From assembly GCA_946965045.2 (NCBI GenBank), contig OX337235.1, positions 1,302,001 through 1,366,000 of the forward strand: a stretch of 64,000 nt of DNA. The letters run 5' to 3'. This DNA comes from Epithemia pelagica (taxonomy: Eukaryota > Protista > Bacillariophyta). Below are positions 1,712 to 9,889 of this stretch, piece after piece. The position numbers were made by a program, and so were the translations under genes. Position 1 is the stretch's first letter. Every line of letters starts with the position of its first letter. The notes under the pieces are model-generated. The model saw only the letters and a list, made by a program, of their open reading frames with translations, made no database searches and was not told where the DNA came from.

Positions 1712-2967
1712 AAAGGGTTATATTATTTTTCCAATGACAAAATGAATGGTTGCACAACCAATCATATCTTTCACGTTGAGAACAGATCCTCTCTTGTATT
1801 TTGACAAGCGGGTATAGGTCGAACCTGTTTGCAAATTCGGTCAGAATTTCTGTGAAACTGAACCTTGGTTCGAAGAGGTGACTGCTTGTCTTGTCGCACG
1901 TTCTTAGAGAACTGAACGGTGGTCTGTTGTCGTATATGCGGAGCCCTTCTTGAAGTCCTTCTCCTCCTGCTTGGCGATCACCGTTGTTGTGATGTTGTTG
2001 ATTGTTTCTTGTGCAAAGAACCCATCCTTTGTCCACGAACCGTGCAACGACAACGCGAACATCATACTACTTTGTCGCGCATGCTGCTTATATGCTTGAC
2101 TTTGTAGTTGGCTTGTATCTCCAATTCGAAACACACTACTGGGATCATATGGTTCTGCAAGGATGAAGCACGACGTTTGCTCGTTTCCAAAGTCGTGTTC
2201 TATCGCTGCAAAGCAGGTACCAAGCAAGATATGAAGGTTCCAACCGTACGGAGTGTTGGGGATTCCAGCGGGAATCCAATACTAAGCACAAAAAGAAACA
2301 AGGAAGAAATTTGGGACCCAAGAGATCTCATGAATAGTATAAGCTACAGATTTTCTCTTGTTCGTTCTAGATTGTGTCTTTTCCACGAACTCTTTTGTGT
2401 TTTCTCTGGCATGGATTTGTACTCTAGGAGTAGTAGATCCATGAGAAAGGAACCCTAAAGTCACTCTCCACATGTACCATGCCTACGTATACCTTTGTTT
2501 TTGGCATGGGTACAATGACCATTGACTCCCATGTGATATCTTTTGAGTGAGACACGTTCTGTTGTCGCGTGCCTTTGAATATTTCGGTGATCCCGCCATT
2601 GTCCGACGCATCTATTTCTGGTGGCTTGCTCTGTATGGTATGCTTCGTTTGGTAGGCTTCATAGATCGAGTCATGTGTTCTGTTGAGTCACCCACGAGCG
2701 AGCATATCTACATCCGCGACCAAGGAAATTTCGTCGCGCAGGGACACCTACGAAAATTATTACCGATGGCCAGTTGCACGTGTAGCCCAATTAGTATTAA
2801 GAGCTCTACTTCCAAACATCGCCTAATACGGAGCGGGCCATATCAACAAGAAAAATACTTATTATGGTTCCTGATAGTAACTAGAAAGTTAACGTTTATC
2901 CTGCCACCTTAACGGACTTACTGTTATGAAGAATGTTTAATTTTGGTCTTGCAAAACTTACTTAAGA

Positions 2968-3026
2968 TGTTTCCAGTCGTGATACCAGTTGTTTCCGTTG
3001 TTTCCGTTGTTTCCAGTCGTGATACC
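2968..3026. repeat. Left part of a degenerate TGTTTCC/CCAGTCGTG tandem array interrupted by the transposon
   Basis: tgtttccagtcgtgataccagttgtttccgttgtttccgttgtttccagtcgtgatacc; the array resumes at 9176. Confidence 0.85.
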
Positions 3027-3053
3027 CACGTTCGACAAGGAGCCGATTTTGTA
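3027..3053 (+). repeat. Left bipartite terminal inverted repeat
   Basis: CACGTTCGACAAGG + AG + CCGATTTTGTA (second block at 3043-3053, element position 17). Confidence 0.9.
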
Positions 3054-3358
3054 TTGTAATATTATGCCTACAGTATTCACTTGGTCTTGGTCTCTAGGTT
3101 GTAGGTCTTCGCCGGCCGACCCTCCACACGTGCCCATGTGTGTATCGTATCTCGTATCTCGTTCCATTTTTTGAAGTGCAGAACTCGTGATTTGCGCATC
3201 AACAATGATGATACCGCGGGATGTAGTTCTCCAATCGCGAACATATTGCACAGCTTCATTCAGATGATAGTTGTCCATAATACCCTAGAAAGTGTTCGCG
3301 ATTGCACTATTTTTGCCATCTTCCGCTGGAGTAGTAGCCTCCAACAACTTGGATCGTC

Positions 3359-4324
3359 ATGGACGAAGCACTCGCAAAGTTGATCCGTGAAATTGGTTCG
3401 GCCAATAGGCCATGGTGGTATGGCATAAATGTAGGTGAAAGCGATGAGAACAGTCTCGCTAATCTACTTGGGATCTCTACGGAGTCCCTAATGTGCCTAT
3501 TGAGTGTTGTCGGATGGGTGTCACGAGTGGCAACAACGAACGAATCAACATCCTCGTCGTGGAGAGTTCAAGAGAGGAAAATTGAAACCTTCCTAGACCG
3601 GTTTCACCTACGAGACATCACAGCGCTCACGAAAAGCAGGTATGGAAATGAGCAACGGCGACATTTCCTTGAAGTGGGTTGCGACAAAACGAGTGCAAGT
3701 CCGCTTTATGTCTTCCGAAATTTCACCAAGCCATCGATTCAAAATACCAAATCCATTGCAGTACAAACAAAAAAGCTGCTTCTGAATGCAACAACAAAAC
3801 AAGCTGGTGACAGTTCTACGGGGACGACTACGAATCCAACAACGCTGATAAAAACCCCATCTCCAAGGCGGCGCAGAAGTAGCATCCTGAAGAGGCCAAG
3901 AGGAGCAGCTGCTGATGACAAGAGGACGCAAAAGCGAGTTTCTCTCTCCAGTGAGACATTGGAGAATGAAAGAAAACGAGCGATGAGAATGGAGAACAAT
4001 TCAAAGATCACCACTCCTGCTACCAACCAGAACAACAACAAGCAGCACGTGAGCCGGAATCAACTCATCAAGCAACAGCTGATTTGCCATTTGTTTCCGA
4101 AAGTCTTCAAGCCGGAGTTCTTCGATGTGATGGAAGAATACTTTTTGGAATCCGAATCTTTTGAGGAGCAAGATCTTGCTGGTGCCCTCGCCTCCGTCAT
4201 GAAAGTACTGTATGAACACAACGAGAGAGAAAGAGGCGAAATGTTGGGGGTTCAAAGTTTTATGACCCCCAATCAAAAATTGAGCACACCTACGTTGCAT
4301 GCCTATGGAATTGACACCGGTTAG
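3359..4324 (+). CDS. Transposon ORF1 (321 aa): probable N-terminal part of the transposase or a separate accessory protein
   Basis: Intact ORF inside the element, basic NLS-like patches (PRRRRS, KRPR), overlaps ORF2 by 26 bp in another frame. Confidence 0.65.
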   Translation: MDEALAKLIREIGSANRPWWYGINVGESDENSLANLLGISTESLMCLLSVVGWVSRVATTNESTSSSWRVQERKIETFLDRFHLRDITALTKSRYGNEQRRHFLEVGCDKTSASPLYVFRNFTKPSIQNTKSIAVQTKKLLLNATTKQAGDSSTGTTTNPTTLIKTPSPRRRRSSILKRPRGAAADDKRTQKRVSLSSETLENERKRAMRMENNSKITTPATNQNNNKQHVSRNQLIKQQLICHLFPKVFKPEFFDVMEEYFLESESFEEQDLAGALASVMKVLYEHNERERGEMLGVQSFMTPNQKLSTPTLHAYGIDTG

Positions 4325-5804
4325 TGATCTTGTGCGAGACCTTGTCACTCTATCTGACAAGCGAAGAAAGCACGATGTGCTCACGACCCGGATGTCTAAC
4401 GGTAGGATGGTATCTTTGGTTCGGATACCAAAATCTACCAATTTGAAAAGCTTCCATGAGCAAGACAGACACTTCAAGTGGATTGATCAAGTCTTGGAAG
4501 CACTCGGGAAACAAAACGACAGGCCGCGGAAGGTGTTGAAGCCGAGTACAGATGTGCGAAATGACGAGGTAGATGAGCTAGAGGAGGATCAGTTAGAGGA
4601 GGGGCAAGAAGAGGAGCTGACCGACATGGAGTATACGGCAAAGAATCTCTTTGCCCATCTCGGCAAGAGATTTCCGAATGGGGTCAAGGAGGCAGTGAAA
4701 CAACAAAAGTTTGCGTGCGTTGCAATGGACCCGGTTGCAACGTTTGCCATGTGGTCGGACGCAAACATAAACTACTCGCAGGCAAGACTGATTGCACGTC
4801 ACCTCAAGTACTGGTTCGGATGTCCCCTGGTTAGCTCACCTGATGAGCTAAAGAGAGTCCTAGTAACTAAGAAGGCTGTGGCACCGGAATGCAATACGCT
4901 ACAATTAAACAACGAGTCAATCGAATGGAGTGTGCGAGATGCGACACAGGTATTGCTTTACTTTTGCAATACTGTGTTTAATCGAGCTGACACTCGACAG
5001 CATTGGACCTCTATTGATATGGTTGTGTCGGCCGACCATGGGAAAGGCTTCTCTCGTGCCCATGCGGTCTTAATTTGTCGGAAACATGACCCTAGCTCAA
5101 ATAAGTGGACGGAACACAAAGACTCCTACAGTCTAGCAGATGCTAGGTGCAAGAAGGACACCTACGAGATCCTGAAAAGCACCTACATGCCAAAACTAGA
5201 CAGTGCGCTAAGTCAGTTGACAGAGAAAGGCGGTATCGACGTGTGGAAGCGAGCCCAACTAAATGAAAATGAAGAGTGGTACTACTCAAGGCTTGCGGGG
5301 TCACGTCCTGACCAACCTAGCGACACACGCTTCTATGGAGGACTCCCAGTAGAAGTGTTCTTGGCAGGAGACCTAGCCCAAATTATGACCAACTATGGGC
5401 GAGAAGGCATGTCTAGCTGCTGGTGTGCCTTTTGTCAGCTGACAAAGGCAGAATGGCAGCCACTTAGTCATGCTCGAGGCACAAAGTGGTCGCTTGCGAC
5501 AATGAAGGCCCAGCTTGAATACAACAAAACGCTCGATGAGAATGCAAAGGGTGCCCTGCAAAAGGGAATAAAAAATGTGCCTTTGCTTACTGCCGTGGAT
5601 GTGTGTCATGTGTCAATGCCTGTTCTCCACATCAAGTTGGGCGTTGTGAACAAGGCTCTAGATTGTTTGTACAGTGATCTCCAGGCTGCCTGTGAGATCT
5701 ACACAGCAGCCTGGATCGATCTTGAAACGGAATGGCTCAGACGGAAAAAGGAAGAAGAACAAGTGGTGAGCGAGCTGATGGAAATCACGCGGCAGATACA
5801 GGAA

Positions 5805-5842
<38 letters not shown>

Positions 5843-6779
5843 GGTTCCGGATGAGCACATTGCAGCTGAGATTGCTTTGTTGAAACAAAGCCTGAAGGAG
5901 AAGGATGGTGAGCGGAAGGCAAGGGCAAAGTTGGTTAAAGAAGCAAAACATGAATGGGACAAAGAGAAGAGTGTCCCTGAGAACTCACGAAAGCATGGAC
6001 AACCTGTCTATCGCAAGTTCGAAGGGATCGAGCGTGCCCATGGAATTGACAGGGCAGCGTTTCATGGGGGTGCTCTGCAAGGCAACCCCTGCAGCACAGT
6101 GTTGGTTGATCGGAAGTTTATCTTCGAAGAGATTTGGGTCTACGTCCGGGACCTCCCGGACGAACAGAAATGGGTGGATAATGCGACAATCAAAAGGGTG
6201 ATTGATGCCTATGAACGATTGATGGGGCATCTCGATGCCACTTTTTCTATTTTGCAGACGCCTCGGAATCACATCACGCCACAACAGGTGCTCCACTTAG
6301 AGCATCATTTGAAGCATGCTTCTTCGGTATGGCGAGCACTCGACATCCCAATTTCACCCAAGATGCACATTTTGGAAGACCATGCACTTGACGCAGTGAA
6401 ACGGTACGGCGGAATCGGTGATTTGGGTGAAGATGAAGGCGAGCGCGCCCATCAGACTGGGGCGCAGATGGAAAGCCGCATGAAGTCTCTAAACCACTCA
6501 ACAAAGGGGCAAGTTGTAGCTCAGTTGGAGGTGATGACAAAGAATGACGCAGTGCAAGACAGGCTTGTTGCGGTCACGAAAGCGGTACAACGGAACGTGA
6601 ACAGGAGAAATGGTGAGGGGGGTGATCAAGAAGCCCCCAAATCCTACAAAGGCAACAAGCACAAGGCCTTGCGTGACTCTGAGCGGGTGGCACTTCTATC
6701 GATGTTCGCTATCCAAGAGGAGAAGTACCCCCGACTTGATGAACTACGACACCAAAAGTTGCTTCAGTCGGAATCATGA
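4299..6779 (+). CDS. DDE transposase, RAG1-core/Transib/Chapaev3-like (826 aa)
   Basis: Colinear motifs: VVSAD246HGKG, LAGD358L...C376xxC379, PVLHIKLG, LQGN, PKMH690ILEDH695...GIGDLGEDEGE715RAHQ; these match the RAG1 DDE triad plus C2H2 zinc site and the Chapaev3 motifs PLHIKLG and SDEHGERFHQ (recalled). Confidence 0.88.
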
Positions 6780-6830
6780 TAGCTACCATAATCGCATGTA
6801 AGGAATACTAAGTAAGGTTTTGGTTAATGA

Positions 6831-7373
6831 CTAAGCTTTCTCTAGTACAAGTCCCCGCTTCGGGAAACCACTGTCACGGCACGCTGTTTTTAGGAGCTTG
6901 AAAGACTCATGGTGCCCCATGATGGTGAAGCGAAGCATCCACTCCCGACACTCTTCTCCAACGTGACATCGGTCTCCTTCATGTCCCAAAGGCAATGGAA
7001 CGACTGCGAAGAACTCGAGTCCCTCGTGTCCATTGCGTTGACTCCTGACACGAAAGACATCCCAAGCCAACACTTCATGGGACAGAAATGTCTTATGGAC
7101 CAGCGTTTTGTCGGCGCCGGTGTAAGACACTTGAAAGCCATGCCCAAAGTTTGTCTTGCCGACAAAGAGAGCGGCACTGTGGCTCCGAGTCCACCTGTGA
7201 TCCTCTGAATCACGGTCTACTATTCCGACCTCAAACATTCCACCAGTCAATCTCATTGTTGTTGCGTCGTTTTTGCCGCCACCAGCAGTCCTGTTCTTTT
7301 CCGTTGCTTCTGCCACGGGGGCGTGTGTTGTCGTGGCTTGTGTCGTTGTCGTTCTTCTTGTTGTTGTTTGAGG
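6831..7373 (-). CDS. Possible convergent ORF inside the transposon (unknown function)
   Basis: Open frame of ~180 codons ending 52 bp from the transposase stop; ordinary amino-acid composition after a T-rich start; no clear ATG/exon structure. Confidence 0.25.
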   Translation of the reverse strand, partial: PQTTTRRTTTTQATTTHAPVAEATEKNRTAGGGKNDATTMRLTGGMFEVGIVDRDSEDHRWTRSHSAALFVGKTNFGHGFQVSYTGADKTLVHKTFLSHEVLAWDVFRVRSQRNGHEGLEFFAVVPLPLGHEGDRCHVGEECREWMLRFTIMGHHESFKLLKTACRDSGFPKRGLVLEKA

Positions 7374-7930
7374 TCAGCGTGGTTGCTTGCGTTGTCGTTG
7401 TTGATGTTGTTGTTGTCGTCGCGGCTTGTGTTGCTACTGTTGTTGTTGCCACGGCTTGTTTTGACGTTGTTGCTGTTGTCTTCGTCGCGGGTTGTGTTGT
7501 CGTCGTCGTTGTTGTCGTCGCTTGTTGTTGCGGGTTGTGTTGTTGGTGTTGTTGTTGTTGTTTCCTGTCAGCGTCGTGGATTGTGTTGTTGTTGTCGTTT
7601 GTTGATGTCGCAGTGGTGTGTTGTTGTTGCCACGGCTTGTCTTGACGTTGTTGCTGTTGTCTTTGTCGCGGGTTGTGTTGTCGTCGTCGTTGTTGTCGTC
7701 GCTTGTTGTCGCGGGTTGTGTTGTTGGTGTTGTTGTTGTTGTTGTTTCCTGTCAGCGTCGTGGATTGTGTTGTTGATGTCGCCGTGGTGTGTTTTGTTGT
7801 TGTTGTTGTTTGTTGATGTCGCCGTGGCGTGTTTTGTTGTTGTTGTTGTTTGCTGTCAGCTCCGTGGTCCGTGGATTGGGTTGTTGTCGTCGTCGTCAAA
7901 GTTTGTTTGTTGTGTTAGTTCCGTCGCCGT
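7250..7930. repeat. (GTT)n/(GTC)n-rich low-complexity tract with an internal 181-bp tandem duplication
   Basis: Block starting tgttgttgccacggcttg at 7441 recurs at 7622. Confidence 0.85.
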
Positions 7931-8195
7931 CCTCGTCCTTGGCTGCTGGCGCGGACGATGGAGTGGCCTCCTGCGCTGTTTGATTGTTGCATCTTGCATC
8001 ACCATGTGCTTCGCTCTCTCATCATTCCCGATTGTGGAATGATTGTTGATATTCAAAAAGTGGGAACGTCGTTCCCACAGGTCAAGCACGTGTGCAGTCT
8101 TGTTGCAGACAAGGCGGGAAGCGCACGCAAGCTCTTCTACACATGGTGGAGAAGCACTTCGTTTGATTGTTGCATCTCTTCACTTTTTGGAAACC

Positions 8196-8860
8196 ATGCA
8201 AGCAGATGAGCAGAAGCAACCGGATGGATATTGCCTCACGGCAATCCTGAAGGACCAAGCTTCAGGCACCACTGCTGTCCTCAATGGTGTTGCCACTGAT
8301 GGCATTGTCGTGTCGTCATCGTCGTCTTCGTCGCCTTTTTCGTTTTCTGTGGACAACTTCACAGGTGAGAAACACGTTGTACACTTGTCTCTGCTGTTTC
8401 ACGTACTTACCTTTTTGTTGTATCGGTTCCAGGAACCATTTGCATCGACGGTGACTGCTGGAAGCTTGTTTACCTCGACCAGCGTCACCGTTCGATGCAA
8501 TCCAAAGACCCGTTGAGCGTCATTGCCTTCAAGATGAAGGATGCTGAACGCACGGACCACGGGGTTGGTACCATTCATGAAGGAGAAGGAGAAGAAGAAG
8601 CCTCAACTGACGAGTCGTCGGACGATGGTGTTGTGTACACCAAGGACTCATTTTCTCAGGATGTCACCATGATGCAAGACGAGCGCCTTCTCAAGGCTTT
8701 CGACTTGATGAGCCCTGATTCACGACATGAACGTGAAGAGGATGATGAGTTACAGAAGAAGAAGAAGAAATGGAACAACAACAACAACAGCAATGATAGC
8801 AATGACTCACCTTTGTTTGCTCGTCGGTCGACGCGACGCAACAACAAAAAGAAGAACTAA
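8196..8860 (+). CDS. Small spliced hypothetical gene inside the transposon (~198 aa, acidic then basic tail)
   Basis: GT-AG intron 8365-8432 (68 bp, GTGAGA...TTCCAG) joins ORF 8043-8516 in frame to ORF 8495-8860: MQADEQKQPDGYCLTAILK...DNFTG|TICIDGDCWKLVY...RRNNKKKN. Confidence 0.5.
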
Positions 8861-9137
8861 TCACAGGTGGTGGGGCAGCCGTTCATGATTCTTGTTTGAT
8901 TGTTGAATAATGAACCAACCCGCCAGGAATAAGTAGTAGTAGTAGTGAGCAGTGCACGTTGTTGACATGTCTGTTGTTGTGCTCGTTCATATCCGTAGTA
9001 GTTTATCACCCGCTTTGCTTTTGCATCTGTTGTTGTTGCACGCTGGTGGAGGCATGTTCTAATAGGTTATGATGCACCTTGGAGGTACGTTCTAATAGGT
9101 TATGAGACTTCAAGAGAAGTGGAAAATAGTACTAAAG

Positions 9138-9175
9138 TACAAAATCGGGGTTTACTGTACCCCTTGTCGAACGTG
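9138..9175 (-). repeat. Right bipartite terminal inverted repeat
   Basis: Read inward: CACGTTCGACAAGG + GGTACAGTAAACC + CCGATTTTGTA (second block at element position 28). Confidence 0.9.
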
Positions 9176-9292
9176 ACCAGTTGTTTCCGTTGTTTCCAGT
9201 TGTTTTTCCAGTTGTTTCCAGTCGTGTTTCCGTTGTTTCCACGCTGTTCCAGTCGTGTGCCCGTTGTTTCCAGTCGTGTGCCCGTTGTTTCC
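9176..9292. repeat. Right continuation of the TGTTTCC/CCAGTCGTG array
   Basis: accagttgtttccgttgtttccagttgtttttccagttgtttccagtcgtg...; includes a duplicated 21-bp unit ccagtcgtgtgcccgttgttt. Confidence 0.85.
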
Positions 9293-9889
9293 GGTCGCCG
9301 TTCGCATGAGACTCTCGGCCCAACGAGATTCAGGACTCCACTCATTTTCCTTTAGTAAACAATATGCGTAAAACCAACCAAGGCTCACCACTCACTCGAT
9401 GGTGACGAGACGCTAGCACAACAATCAACCCGCCTCCTCTTTGCATACGAACAGCTACTAATAGAGAGCATCAACCTAGTTGTACATGCACGTATGTGTC
9501 GTAGGCCGTAGCTATCGTTTCCGCCGTCATTCATCTGTCTTCATCCATCCTCGTTCGCCACCCTCTCTTTTGCCTGCATCGATCCATTTGTCTTTGTCTT
9601 TCTTGATTGTCACCATGTCTACCAAGAGACTCAAGATTCCATGGATGGTTGTGATGGCGGCTGACTTGATTGTTGCGTTTGATGTTTGATTGTTTTGTTT
9701 TGTTTTGACGAAGAGCTGTTTGTTGCGTTCGCACGCCATTGTCGTTGATTGTTTTGTGTTCGATGTTGAATGTTGAATGCTCGTCAACGTCCAAGGATCA
9801 TTCCACCAAAGCCCCCTACCGTGAGGATCCGAGTGCTTTTCAGCCAGAAAGTTCAGGATCTTTCTTGGGATCTTTCTTCGTGTATCCAA

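Follow-up and report, generated by a model that had tools for sequence, protein, structure and literature searches.

Positions 3027-9175 of a 64,000-nucleotide window from the diatom Epithemia pelagica (GenBank assembly GCA_946965045.2, contig OX337235.1, forward strand 1,302,001 to 1,366,000) hold a cut-and-paste transposon of 6,149 bp, here called the window element. Each of its ends consists of a terminal repeat and an inner block, and the block lies one turn of the DNA helix deeper at one end than at the other. Comparison of aligned ends gives real support to the view that this one-turn asymmetry is conserved in a group of transposons with a predicted RAG1-type fold, but gives none to a specific homology with the RSSs (recombination signal sequences) of V(D)J recombination. 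End architecture of this kind is known elsewhere but had not been seen in this lineage.

Ends of the element

The element is bounded by perfect 14-bp terminal inverted repeats (TIRs), and the two copies of CACGTTCGACAAGG listed in Table 1 are the only exact ones in the window. Read inwards, the left end is composed of the TIR, the dinucleotide AG and an 11-bp block, CCGATTTTGTA, and the right end of the TIR, the sequence GGTACAGTAAACC and the same block. The block starts at position 17 on the left and at position 28 on the right, an offset of exactly 11 bp. An earlier, sequence-only reading of this DNA had described the shared repeat, the block and the offset, and its description is exact in window coordinates. 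Chance would rarely place an 11-mer on the +10/+11 diagonal inside the terminal 60 bp (shuffle P = 5e-5). A k-mer comparison of the terminal 400 bp gave no other shared word of at least 9 bp in the same orientation, and the terminal 70 bp contain one other shared word, the 7-mer TACAGTA (left 43, right 17), which alone is not significant.

A constant offset among copies had been named beforehand as decisive, and it holds for the three copies compared (window, L001 and L008), in which the first 67-70 bases at both ends are identical and the flanks differ. All copies are about 99% identical, so conservation within the family says nothing about constraint.

Recurrence of the offset in related families

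The ends of eight families (A-H) were compared, A being the family of the window element and the seven others sharing approximately 20-35% protein identity. L denotes the end upstream of the transposase gene and R the downstream end, read as the reverse complement. The boundaries of family B were set by comparing three copies, while L003, L004 and L005, which miss one or both ends, were excluded. Each family was scored by its best ungapped segment inward of the TIR, taken from the first 60 bp and from diagonals +10 and +11, and the null distribution was obtained by shuffling the right subterminal sequence 20,000 times.

Families A and D have an offset of +11, and E and G one of +10 (shuffle P = 5e-5 for A, 0.003 for D, 5e-5 for E and 0.004 for G). 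The longer spacing lies at the 3' end in all four, and the shift equals one turn each time and never two, with blocks that are unrelated in sequence from one family to another. Shuffle P values were 0.97, 0.25, 0.21 and 0.22 for B, C, F and H, respectively. The proposal that related elements would share the offset was thus borne out in D, E and G, where the sequences involved are unrelated, and failed in B, C, F and H. Family A had generated the hypothesis and was therefore omitted from the combined test, which gave a Fisher P of 3.5e-6 over the seven other families; the mirror control on diagonals -10/-11 gave 0.91, and the diagonal profile summed over B-H has its maximum at +10. In the transposase tree A, B, C and D form one major clade, with B grouping with A and D in their sister group, and E, F and G fall in the other, so that offset-positive families occur in both.

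A neutral accident, in which a long imperfect inverted repeat was hit by an 11-bp insertion or deletion and the offsets of the relatives are coincidental, could account for family A with a single event; its copies are nearly identical, and half of the families do without the offset. It is nevertheless highly improbable in our view, as three more families of unrelated sequence repeat the 10-11 bp shift with the same polarity, at the combined P given above, and a simple indel does not explain the shift in family G, where a deeper block has kept its register. Since the geometry is kept while TIR, block and spacer sequences have all been replaced, the spacing itself appears to be under selection. 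The geometry could be either old, with losses, or repeatedly gained.

Two further similarities were noticed in the right subterminal regions. In families A (window 9155-9159, reverse strand) and E (L012) the long spacer opens with TACAG, occupying positions 17-21 as counted from the right tip, and in family D TACAA stands at positions 23-27; this motif may be a third conserved element peculiar to the long end. The 12-mer TTAGTACTATTT, compared by eye, is exactly common to A and C (L009, positions 45-56), where a 12-mer match between two 70-bp windows would be expected by chance about 2e-4 times. The transposases of these two families belong to different subclades of the tree and their contigs come from different samples, and the 12-mer may be a conserved binding site.

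Table 1. Positions of features in the window element and of related elements used in the comparison. Block positions are counted from the left (L) and right (R) tips, with the offset in brackets.
Feature	Position	Strand	Remarks
Left 3-bp target site duplication (TSD), ACC	3024..3026	.	paralogous uninterrupted target at 2976-2997
Left (5') TIR, CACGTTCGACAAGG	3027..3040	+	similarity between independent copies begins precisely here
Short spacer AG between TIR and second block, 2 nt	3041..3042	+	
Left second block, CCGATTTTGTA	3043..3053	+	positions 17-27 from left end
Transposase gene, predicted RAG1-fold DDE core	3359..6779	+	window copy split into open reading frames (ORFs) 3359-4324 and 4299-6779
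AAC repeat encoding poly-Q tract within coiled-coil insertion	5806..5842	+	
GTT-rich tandem-repeat region	7399..7867	.	copy number differs among element copies
Subterminal 12-mer, TTAGTACTATTT	9124..9135	-	positions 41-52 from right end
Right second block, CCGATTTTGTA	9138..9148	-	positions 28-38 from right end
Long spacer, GGTACAGTAAACC (read from right end), 13 nt	9149..9161	-	exceeds left spacer by 11 nt
Right (3') TIR, CACGTTCGACAAGG	9162..9175	-	similarity of copies ends here
Right 3-bp TSD, ACC	9176..9178	.	
Family B element	L006:7691-11920		three copies; TSD AAG/AAG, TGT/TGT; TIR CAC[G/A]TTCCGA; block CACATAG L37/R35 (-2)
Family C element	L009:800-6672		terminal repeat CACATCCCACAAA; weak block matches only (+1; +29/+31)
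Family D element	L010:141-4698		33% identical to A in the search of representative proteins; 18-bp TIR, 15/18; block G[T/C]TCAGGTG L21/R32 (+11), TCAGGTG part L23/R34
Family E element	L012:4-4247		16-bp TIR, 15/16; block GGCG[A/C]TGAACAGG L18/R28 (+10)
Family F element	L013:137-3784		terminal repeat CACACTGATTT; no second block
Family G elements	L017-L026, ten contigs		terminal repeat CACGGTAGTTCA; block GCGAATG L16/R26 (+10)
Family G, further blocks			TCGTAGAA L34-35/R35 (0/+1); second CGTAGAAAG on right (+11/+12)
Family H element	L016:163-5719		4-bp TSD GCAT; terminal repeat CACAGTAGTTTT; block at +4
Second gene, family B	L006:11258-11713	-	second genes homologous to one another, blastp E 1e-3 to 1e-12
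Second gene, family D	L010:3905-4429	-	
Second gene, family E	L012:3627-4073	-	
Second gene, L005 family	L005:3565-4089	-	

Transposase

Other copies of the element, including L001 and L008, encode an intact transposase of 1,139-1,143 aa. Its representative P0001 (1,139 aa, L001:10001-13420) matches both large ORFs of the window at 98% identity in a protein search, and an exhaustive search of representative proteins gave 1,015 relatives at E <= 0.001. The aspartates of SADHG and AGDLA, the CxxC and HxxxxH motifs and E..HQ are near-invariant in an alignment of 35 relatives. Pfam scans gave no match for the ORFs of the element or for the N-terminal 420 aa and no RAG1 or Transib family, and the Transposase_21-type CACTA model matched neither the query nor the 35 relatives; two relatives have weak DUF1280 matches, and such weak matches occur in family G. 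Searches of PDB sequences with phmmer and with a profile of the 35 sequences did not find RAG1, the amphioxus protein BbRAGL or the Helicoverpa Transib transposase (HzTransib) and returned only poly-Q and coiled-coil noise.

The AlphaFold model of P0001 residues 400-1139 (predicted local distance difference test score 88.5, predicted template modelling score 0.85) matched mouse RAG1 460-1008 with a Foldseek E of 1e-12 and a VIA-align Z of 23, and BbRAGL and HzTransib with a VIA-align Z of 20, all over about 470 residues. The predicted core of the transposase has the RAG1 fold, and its link to RAG1 is by fold only. N-terminal to it, residues ~310-390 form a conserved small alpha/beta unit in the predicted structure, for which no convincing structural or Atlas match was found. 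An acidic disordered linker separates this unit from helices 427-453, which precede the DDBD-like region and in some alignments only superpose loosely on the nonamer-binding domain (NBD) of RAG1, residues 421-459. Family A alone has a DRPRK stretch following its small N-terminal domain, and this stretch is not conserved.

The model also contains a long antiparallel coiled-coil insertion between CxxC and HxxxxH (window 5400-5960; model residues 386-481 of P0001:400-1139), and the length of the poly-Q varies between transposase copies.

Possible basis of the asymmetry

We hypothesize that each end has two parts with separate roles, the terminal CAC-repeat, which would be cut by the catalytic core, and the inner block. 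At the 5' end the block lies approximately 16-21 bp from the tip, and at the 3' end it is deeper by one helical turn (10-11 bp). It would most probably be the docking site for a second DNA-binding part of the transposase located N-terminal to the RAG1-like core, the candidates being the alpha/beta unit at ~310-390 and the two helices 427-453. The NBD of RAG1 dimerises on a flexible tether (PMC10462144); if the N-terminal module of the diatom transposase did likewise, a short/long pair would be the preferred synapse. We infer from the arrangement of the ends that the block is a putative protein-binding site and that a short/long pair may be preferred or required. Taken as a whole, a selected asymmetric second contact at the ends is the explanation that we consider probable, if by no great distance, and should such a contact exist, the chances that it reflects a true pairing preference are roughly even.

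Several observations weigh against this explanation. Four of the eight families lack the one-turn offset, and B, recently mobile and grouped with A, is among them, so the geometry is not obligatory for this type of enzyme. For C, D, F and H the ends were read from a single copy per family, and in E a second copy (L011) confirms the right boundary alone. The blocks of family G, one displaced and a deeper one unshifted, are as compatible with phased sites as with a pairing rule. The resemblance to the NBD is weak (Z 7.2, root-mean-square deviation 5 Å) and carried mostly by the DDBD, and the region preceding the NBD-like helices is the acidic linker and not a conserved GRPR motif.

Helical phasing could produce the same picture with no pairing rule. 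The blocks, as sites for the transposase or for a host factor, would only have to share a helical face with the terminal repeat, at n or n+1 turns; the two ends would be unequal on other grounds, for instance to be told apart for ordered cleavage or to leave space for a 5' promoter, and pairs of two left or two right ends would still transpose. The three blocks of family G, one at +10, a deeper one at 0/+1 and a third copy at +11/+12, are what phasing would give, as are the several xGTA-type motifs about 9-11 bp apart in families A and C, and B, C and H are mobile or intact with no one-turn offset. CACTA elements, moreover, carry multiple subterminal binding motifs that are unequally distributed. 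Phasing, however, predicts both polarities, yet in all four families the 3' end is the long one and the -10/-11 control shows no signal, and the shift is a single turn each time. We consider phasing without pairing, the chief rival explanation, unlikely, although it deserves serious attention.

Relation to recombination signal sequences

The sequence-only reading had compared the ends with the 12/23 arrangement of RSSs, counting 12 and 23 bp after a heptamer. That register was a matter of choice, for the distance from a 7-bp heptamer to the start of the block is 9 and 20. By that measure, which runs up to the first shared base, the families have spacers of 9/20 (A), 13/24 (D), 10/20 (E) and 8/18 (G). 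It had also aligned the block, read on the opposite strand as ACAAAATCG, with the RSS nonamer; the count of 7/9 identical positions is right, and the likeness itself fails because it is inverted and is not found in D, E and G. We take the resemblance as chance, since it lies on the wrong strand and is not common to these families. Homology with the nonamer was rejected, as the blocks of the other families (TCAGGTG, GGCGATGAACAGG and GCGAATG) are neither A/T-rich nor alike.

Direct descent from RSS-type signals would require that heptamer, spacer and nonamer be homologous to the Transib/RAG signals and that 12/23 be literally conserved. The termini do begin with CAC, the enzyme is predicted to be RAG1-fold, the A block resembles the nonamer as just described, and the block centres at about 22/33 (A), 25/36 (D) and 24/34 (E) are near the RSS nonamer centres at 24/35. 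Against it stand the dissimilar blocks of D, E and G and the inverted A block; CAC termini are general in the CACTA-Mirage-Chapaev-Transib (CMCT) group (PMC12730594), and the points that separate the element from Transib and RAG1, set out below, apply here as well. Such descent is very unlikely. The arrangement shares with the RSSs of V(D)J recombination a terminal CAC element and an inner element about 11 bp deeper at one partner; it differs in that neither the sequence nor the orientation of the nonamer is kept and that an NBD with a GRPR motif is not demonstrable.

Classification

The element belongs to an undescribed protist lineage within the CMCT group and is neither a Transib nor a RAG element. 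The hallmarks of the group are DDE, C(2)C and H(3-4)H, CA..TG termini and duplications of 2-5 bp (Kojima 2025, PMC12730594). We place the element there because its DDE, C(2)C and H(4)H motifs, its CACG...CGTG termini and its TSD of 3 bp, found in families A and B, agree with these hallmarks; the predicted RAG1-type fold is present too. Membership of Transib was rejected, given that Transib target duplications are 5 bp (PMC1131882) and that no similarity to Transib or RAG1 was detected at the sequence level. Membership of the RAG-like (RAGL)/ProtoRAG elements was rejected for the 3-bp TSD, the want of sequence similarity and the absence of a RAG2-like gene, although the RAG1-like fold of the catalytic core is predicted (Z 20-23). 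A close tie to Transib or ProtoRAG does not survive these same differences. Among CACTA features, the element has the 3-bp TSD and CAC termini, though these read CACGT.. and not CACTA, and it lacks a TnpD-type transposase (Transposase_21 and relatives).

No RAG2-like kelch/PHD gene was found; the second ORF of families B, D and E is not kelch and has no Pfam match. This small convergent gene of about 148-175 aa lies directly after the transposase gene in B, D, E and the L005 family. A tblastn search with the B, D and E products gave no homologue in family A, whose ORF 6831-7316 (reverse strand) is unrelated to them, and family G has no second gene. A search for related loci with a narrow alignment of the transposases gave 6 metagenome loci and none in viral or prokaryotic collections.

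Comparison with known systems

Several Transib families (Transib5, Transib2_AG and TransibN1-N3_AG) have RSS12-like 5' termini and RSS23-like 3' termini (Kapitonov & Jurka 2005, PMC1131882). Transib resembles the diatom elements in the RAG1 fold, CAC-type termini, bipartite ends and an asymmetry of about one turn, short at 5' and long at 3'. It has, however, a 5-bp TSD, an A-rich nonamer-like block and a transposase of about 700 aa that is recognisably RAG1-like in sequence, whereas in the window element the TSD is 3 bp, the blocks vary by family and the protein, of 1,139 aa, includes a coiled-coil insertion as well as a long N-terminal part.

Among RAGL elements, amphioxus ProtoRAG depends on unlike ends with 27/31 spacers, of which a 5'/3' TIR pair is needed (PMC8289069), and the ends of PflRAGL-A show a 10-bp TIR asymmetry, from which its authors argue that the first RAG-like transposon was already asymmetric (PMC10462144). 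The diatom elements have in common with them asymmetric bipartite ends, a conserved first CAC and a predicted RAG1-fold core (Z 20 to BbRAGL). Unlike RAGL, with its convergent RAG2-like kelch gene, 5-bp TSD and TR2/nonamer-like elements read by CTT/NBD domains, they carry no second gene (A, G) or a small unrelated one (B, D, E), and their TSD is 3 bp.

The EnSpm/CACTA elements share the 3-bp TSD, CAC...GTG termini, short terminal repeats, DDE, C(2)C and H(4)H, and subterminal motifs; the diatom elements differ from them in the lack of a CACTA Pfam match and of a TnpA-type second protein and in termini that are not CACTA. To our knowledge, a one-turn bipartite asymmetry is not described as a CACTA feature. 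In the Drosophila P element the spacing from terminal repeat to transposase binding site is 9 bp at one end and 21 bp at the other (PMC7776569), again short at 5' and long at 3' by about one helical turn, and its likeness to 12/23 has been remarked in the literature. Its transposase (THAP, GTP-binding and RNase H), 31-bp TIR and 8-bp TSD are different, and with an unrelated transposase the likeness is convergent, which shows that such an asymmetry can arise independently.

Outside V(D)J recombination, 12/23-type asymmetry has been considered known only in some Transibs (Yakovenko et al., PMC8355894). Our limited literature search found no report of it in a CMCT member outside Transib with a 3-bp TSD or in protists. 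The present debate, which sets the Transib-seed hypothesis against descent from RAGL-A and also asks whether the first RAGL had asymmetric ends, rests only on Transib and animal RAGL. The lineage described here has the predicted RAG1 fold yet stands outside Transib and RAGL by TSD length, gene content and sequence, and it provides fresh, near-identical copies in a protist. If the asymmetry is functional, its intact 1,139-aa transposase, 40-bp ends and natural spacer variants across families would make it an independent and tractable system that could reveal what in a RAG1-fold dimer favours unlike ends, and whether the feature is ancestral or, as it must be in the P element, convergent. A one-turn asymmetry, short at 5' and long at 3', that is ancestral to all RAG1-fold transposases and was inherited by Transib, RAGL and this lineage seems to us doubtful. 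If it were true, the geometric root of the 12/23 rule would predate animals and the split between Transib and CACTA-type elements, with enforcement by an N-terminal dimeric DNA-binding module equivalent to the NBD of RAG1.

Copies, mobility and target sites

The window element, recently mobile, is one copy of an autonomous DNA transposon of the cut-and-paste type, and its own transposase gene is broken. A second copy, L001:9676-15813, is 98.9% identical to it, and similarity ends exactly at the termini; a third, L008:7676-13470 (5,795 bp, about 99% identical), likewise loses similarity there. Target duplications of 3 bp flank the window copy (ACC/ACC) and L001 (AGA/AGA), while the flanks of L008 do not match (ACC vs ATA). 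Clustering at 90% identity places P0001 in a group of 11 sequences, which lie on seven contigs of one ENA assembly, indicating that the genome holds several copies. A 14-nt deletion at ~4317/4318 splits the window gene into two ORFs, whereas L001 has one frame, and most contigs of the three runs of the organism have the 14 extra nt (AACAAACAAACG + GT or equivalent).

An uninterrupted paralogous target, GTCGTGATACCAGTTGTTTCCG, lies 30 bp upstream of the element in the same microsatellite-like flank. The loss of similarity in the other copies, the 3-bp duplications and this target each define the limits of the element independently. The flanks 2958-3026 and 9176-9300 are a minisatellite of the GTTTCC/CAGTCGTG type that surrounds the element and is the source of this paralogous empty site, and because of it an empty allele is indistinguishable in read data from an adjacent repeat unit.

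In family G, the element at 51-3922 of L022 is flanked on both sides by the 5-bp direct repeat CCGGT, which as a TSD would be Transib-like; the flanks of the other family G contigs are unmatched, probably since repeat-collapsed metagenome contigs are chimeric. The family H element is a more distant one, in the 131-kb contig WLWD01006145.1. Its perfect 12-bp TIR matches the RSS heptamer at 6/7 positions, and the difference of +4 of its second block, TTTA[C/G]ACCC[A/G]CCC, is the same as that of the 27/31 ends of ProtoRAG.

The right-end spacer has no length variant in the contigs of the three runs, a check that covered the right end only and used assembled Logan contigs, in which rare variants are dropped or hidden. 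Some contigs of runs X1 and X2 match the right end up to 9163 and go on with CAAACGAACGTG in place of TTGTCGAACGTG. In this sub-family the right terminal repeat differs at positions 8-12 and the terminal CACGTTC is kept; no matching left end was found among the fetched loci. A 361-bp stretch of the GTT-rich region (joint 7304->7666) is absent from some copies, giving the 5,795-bp form of L008, and this joint is present in all three runs.

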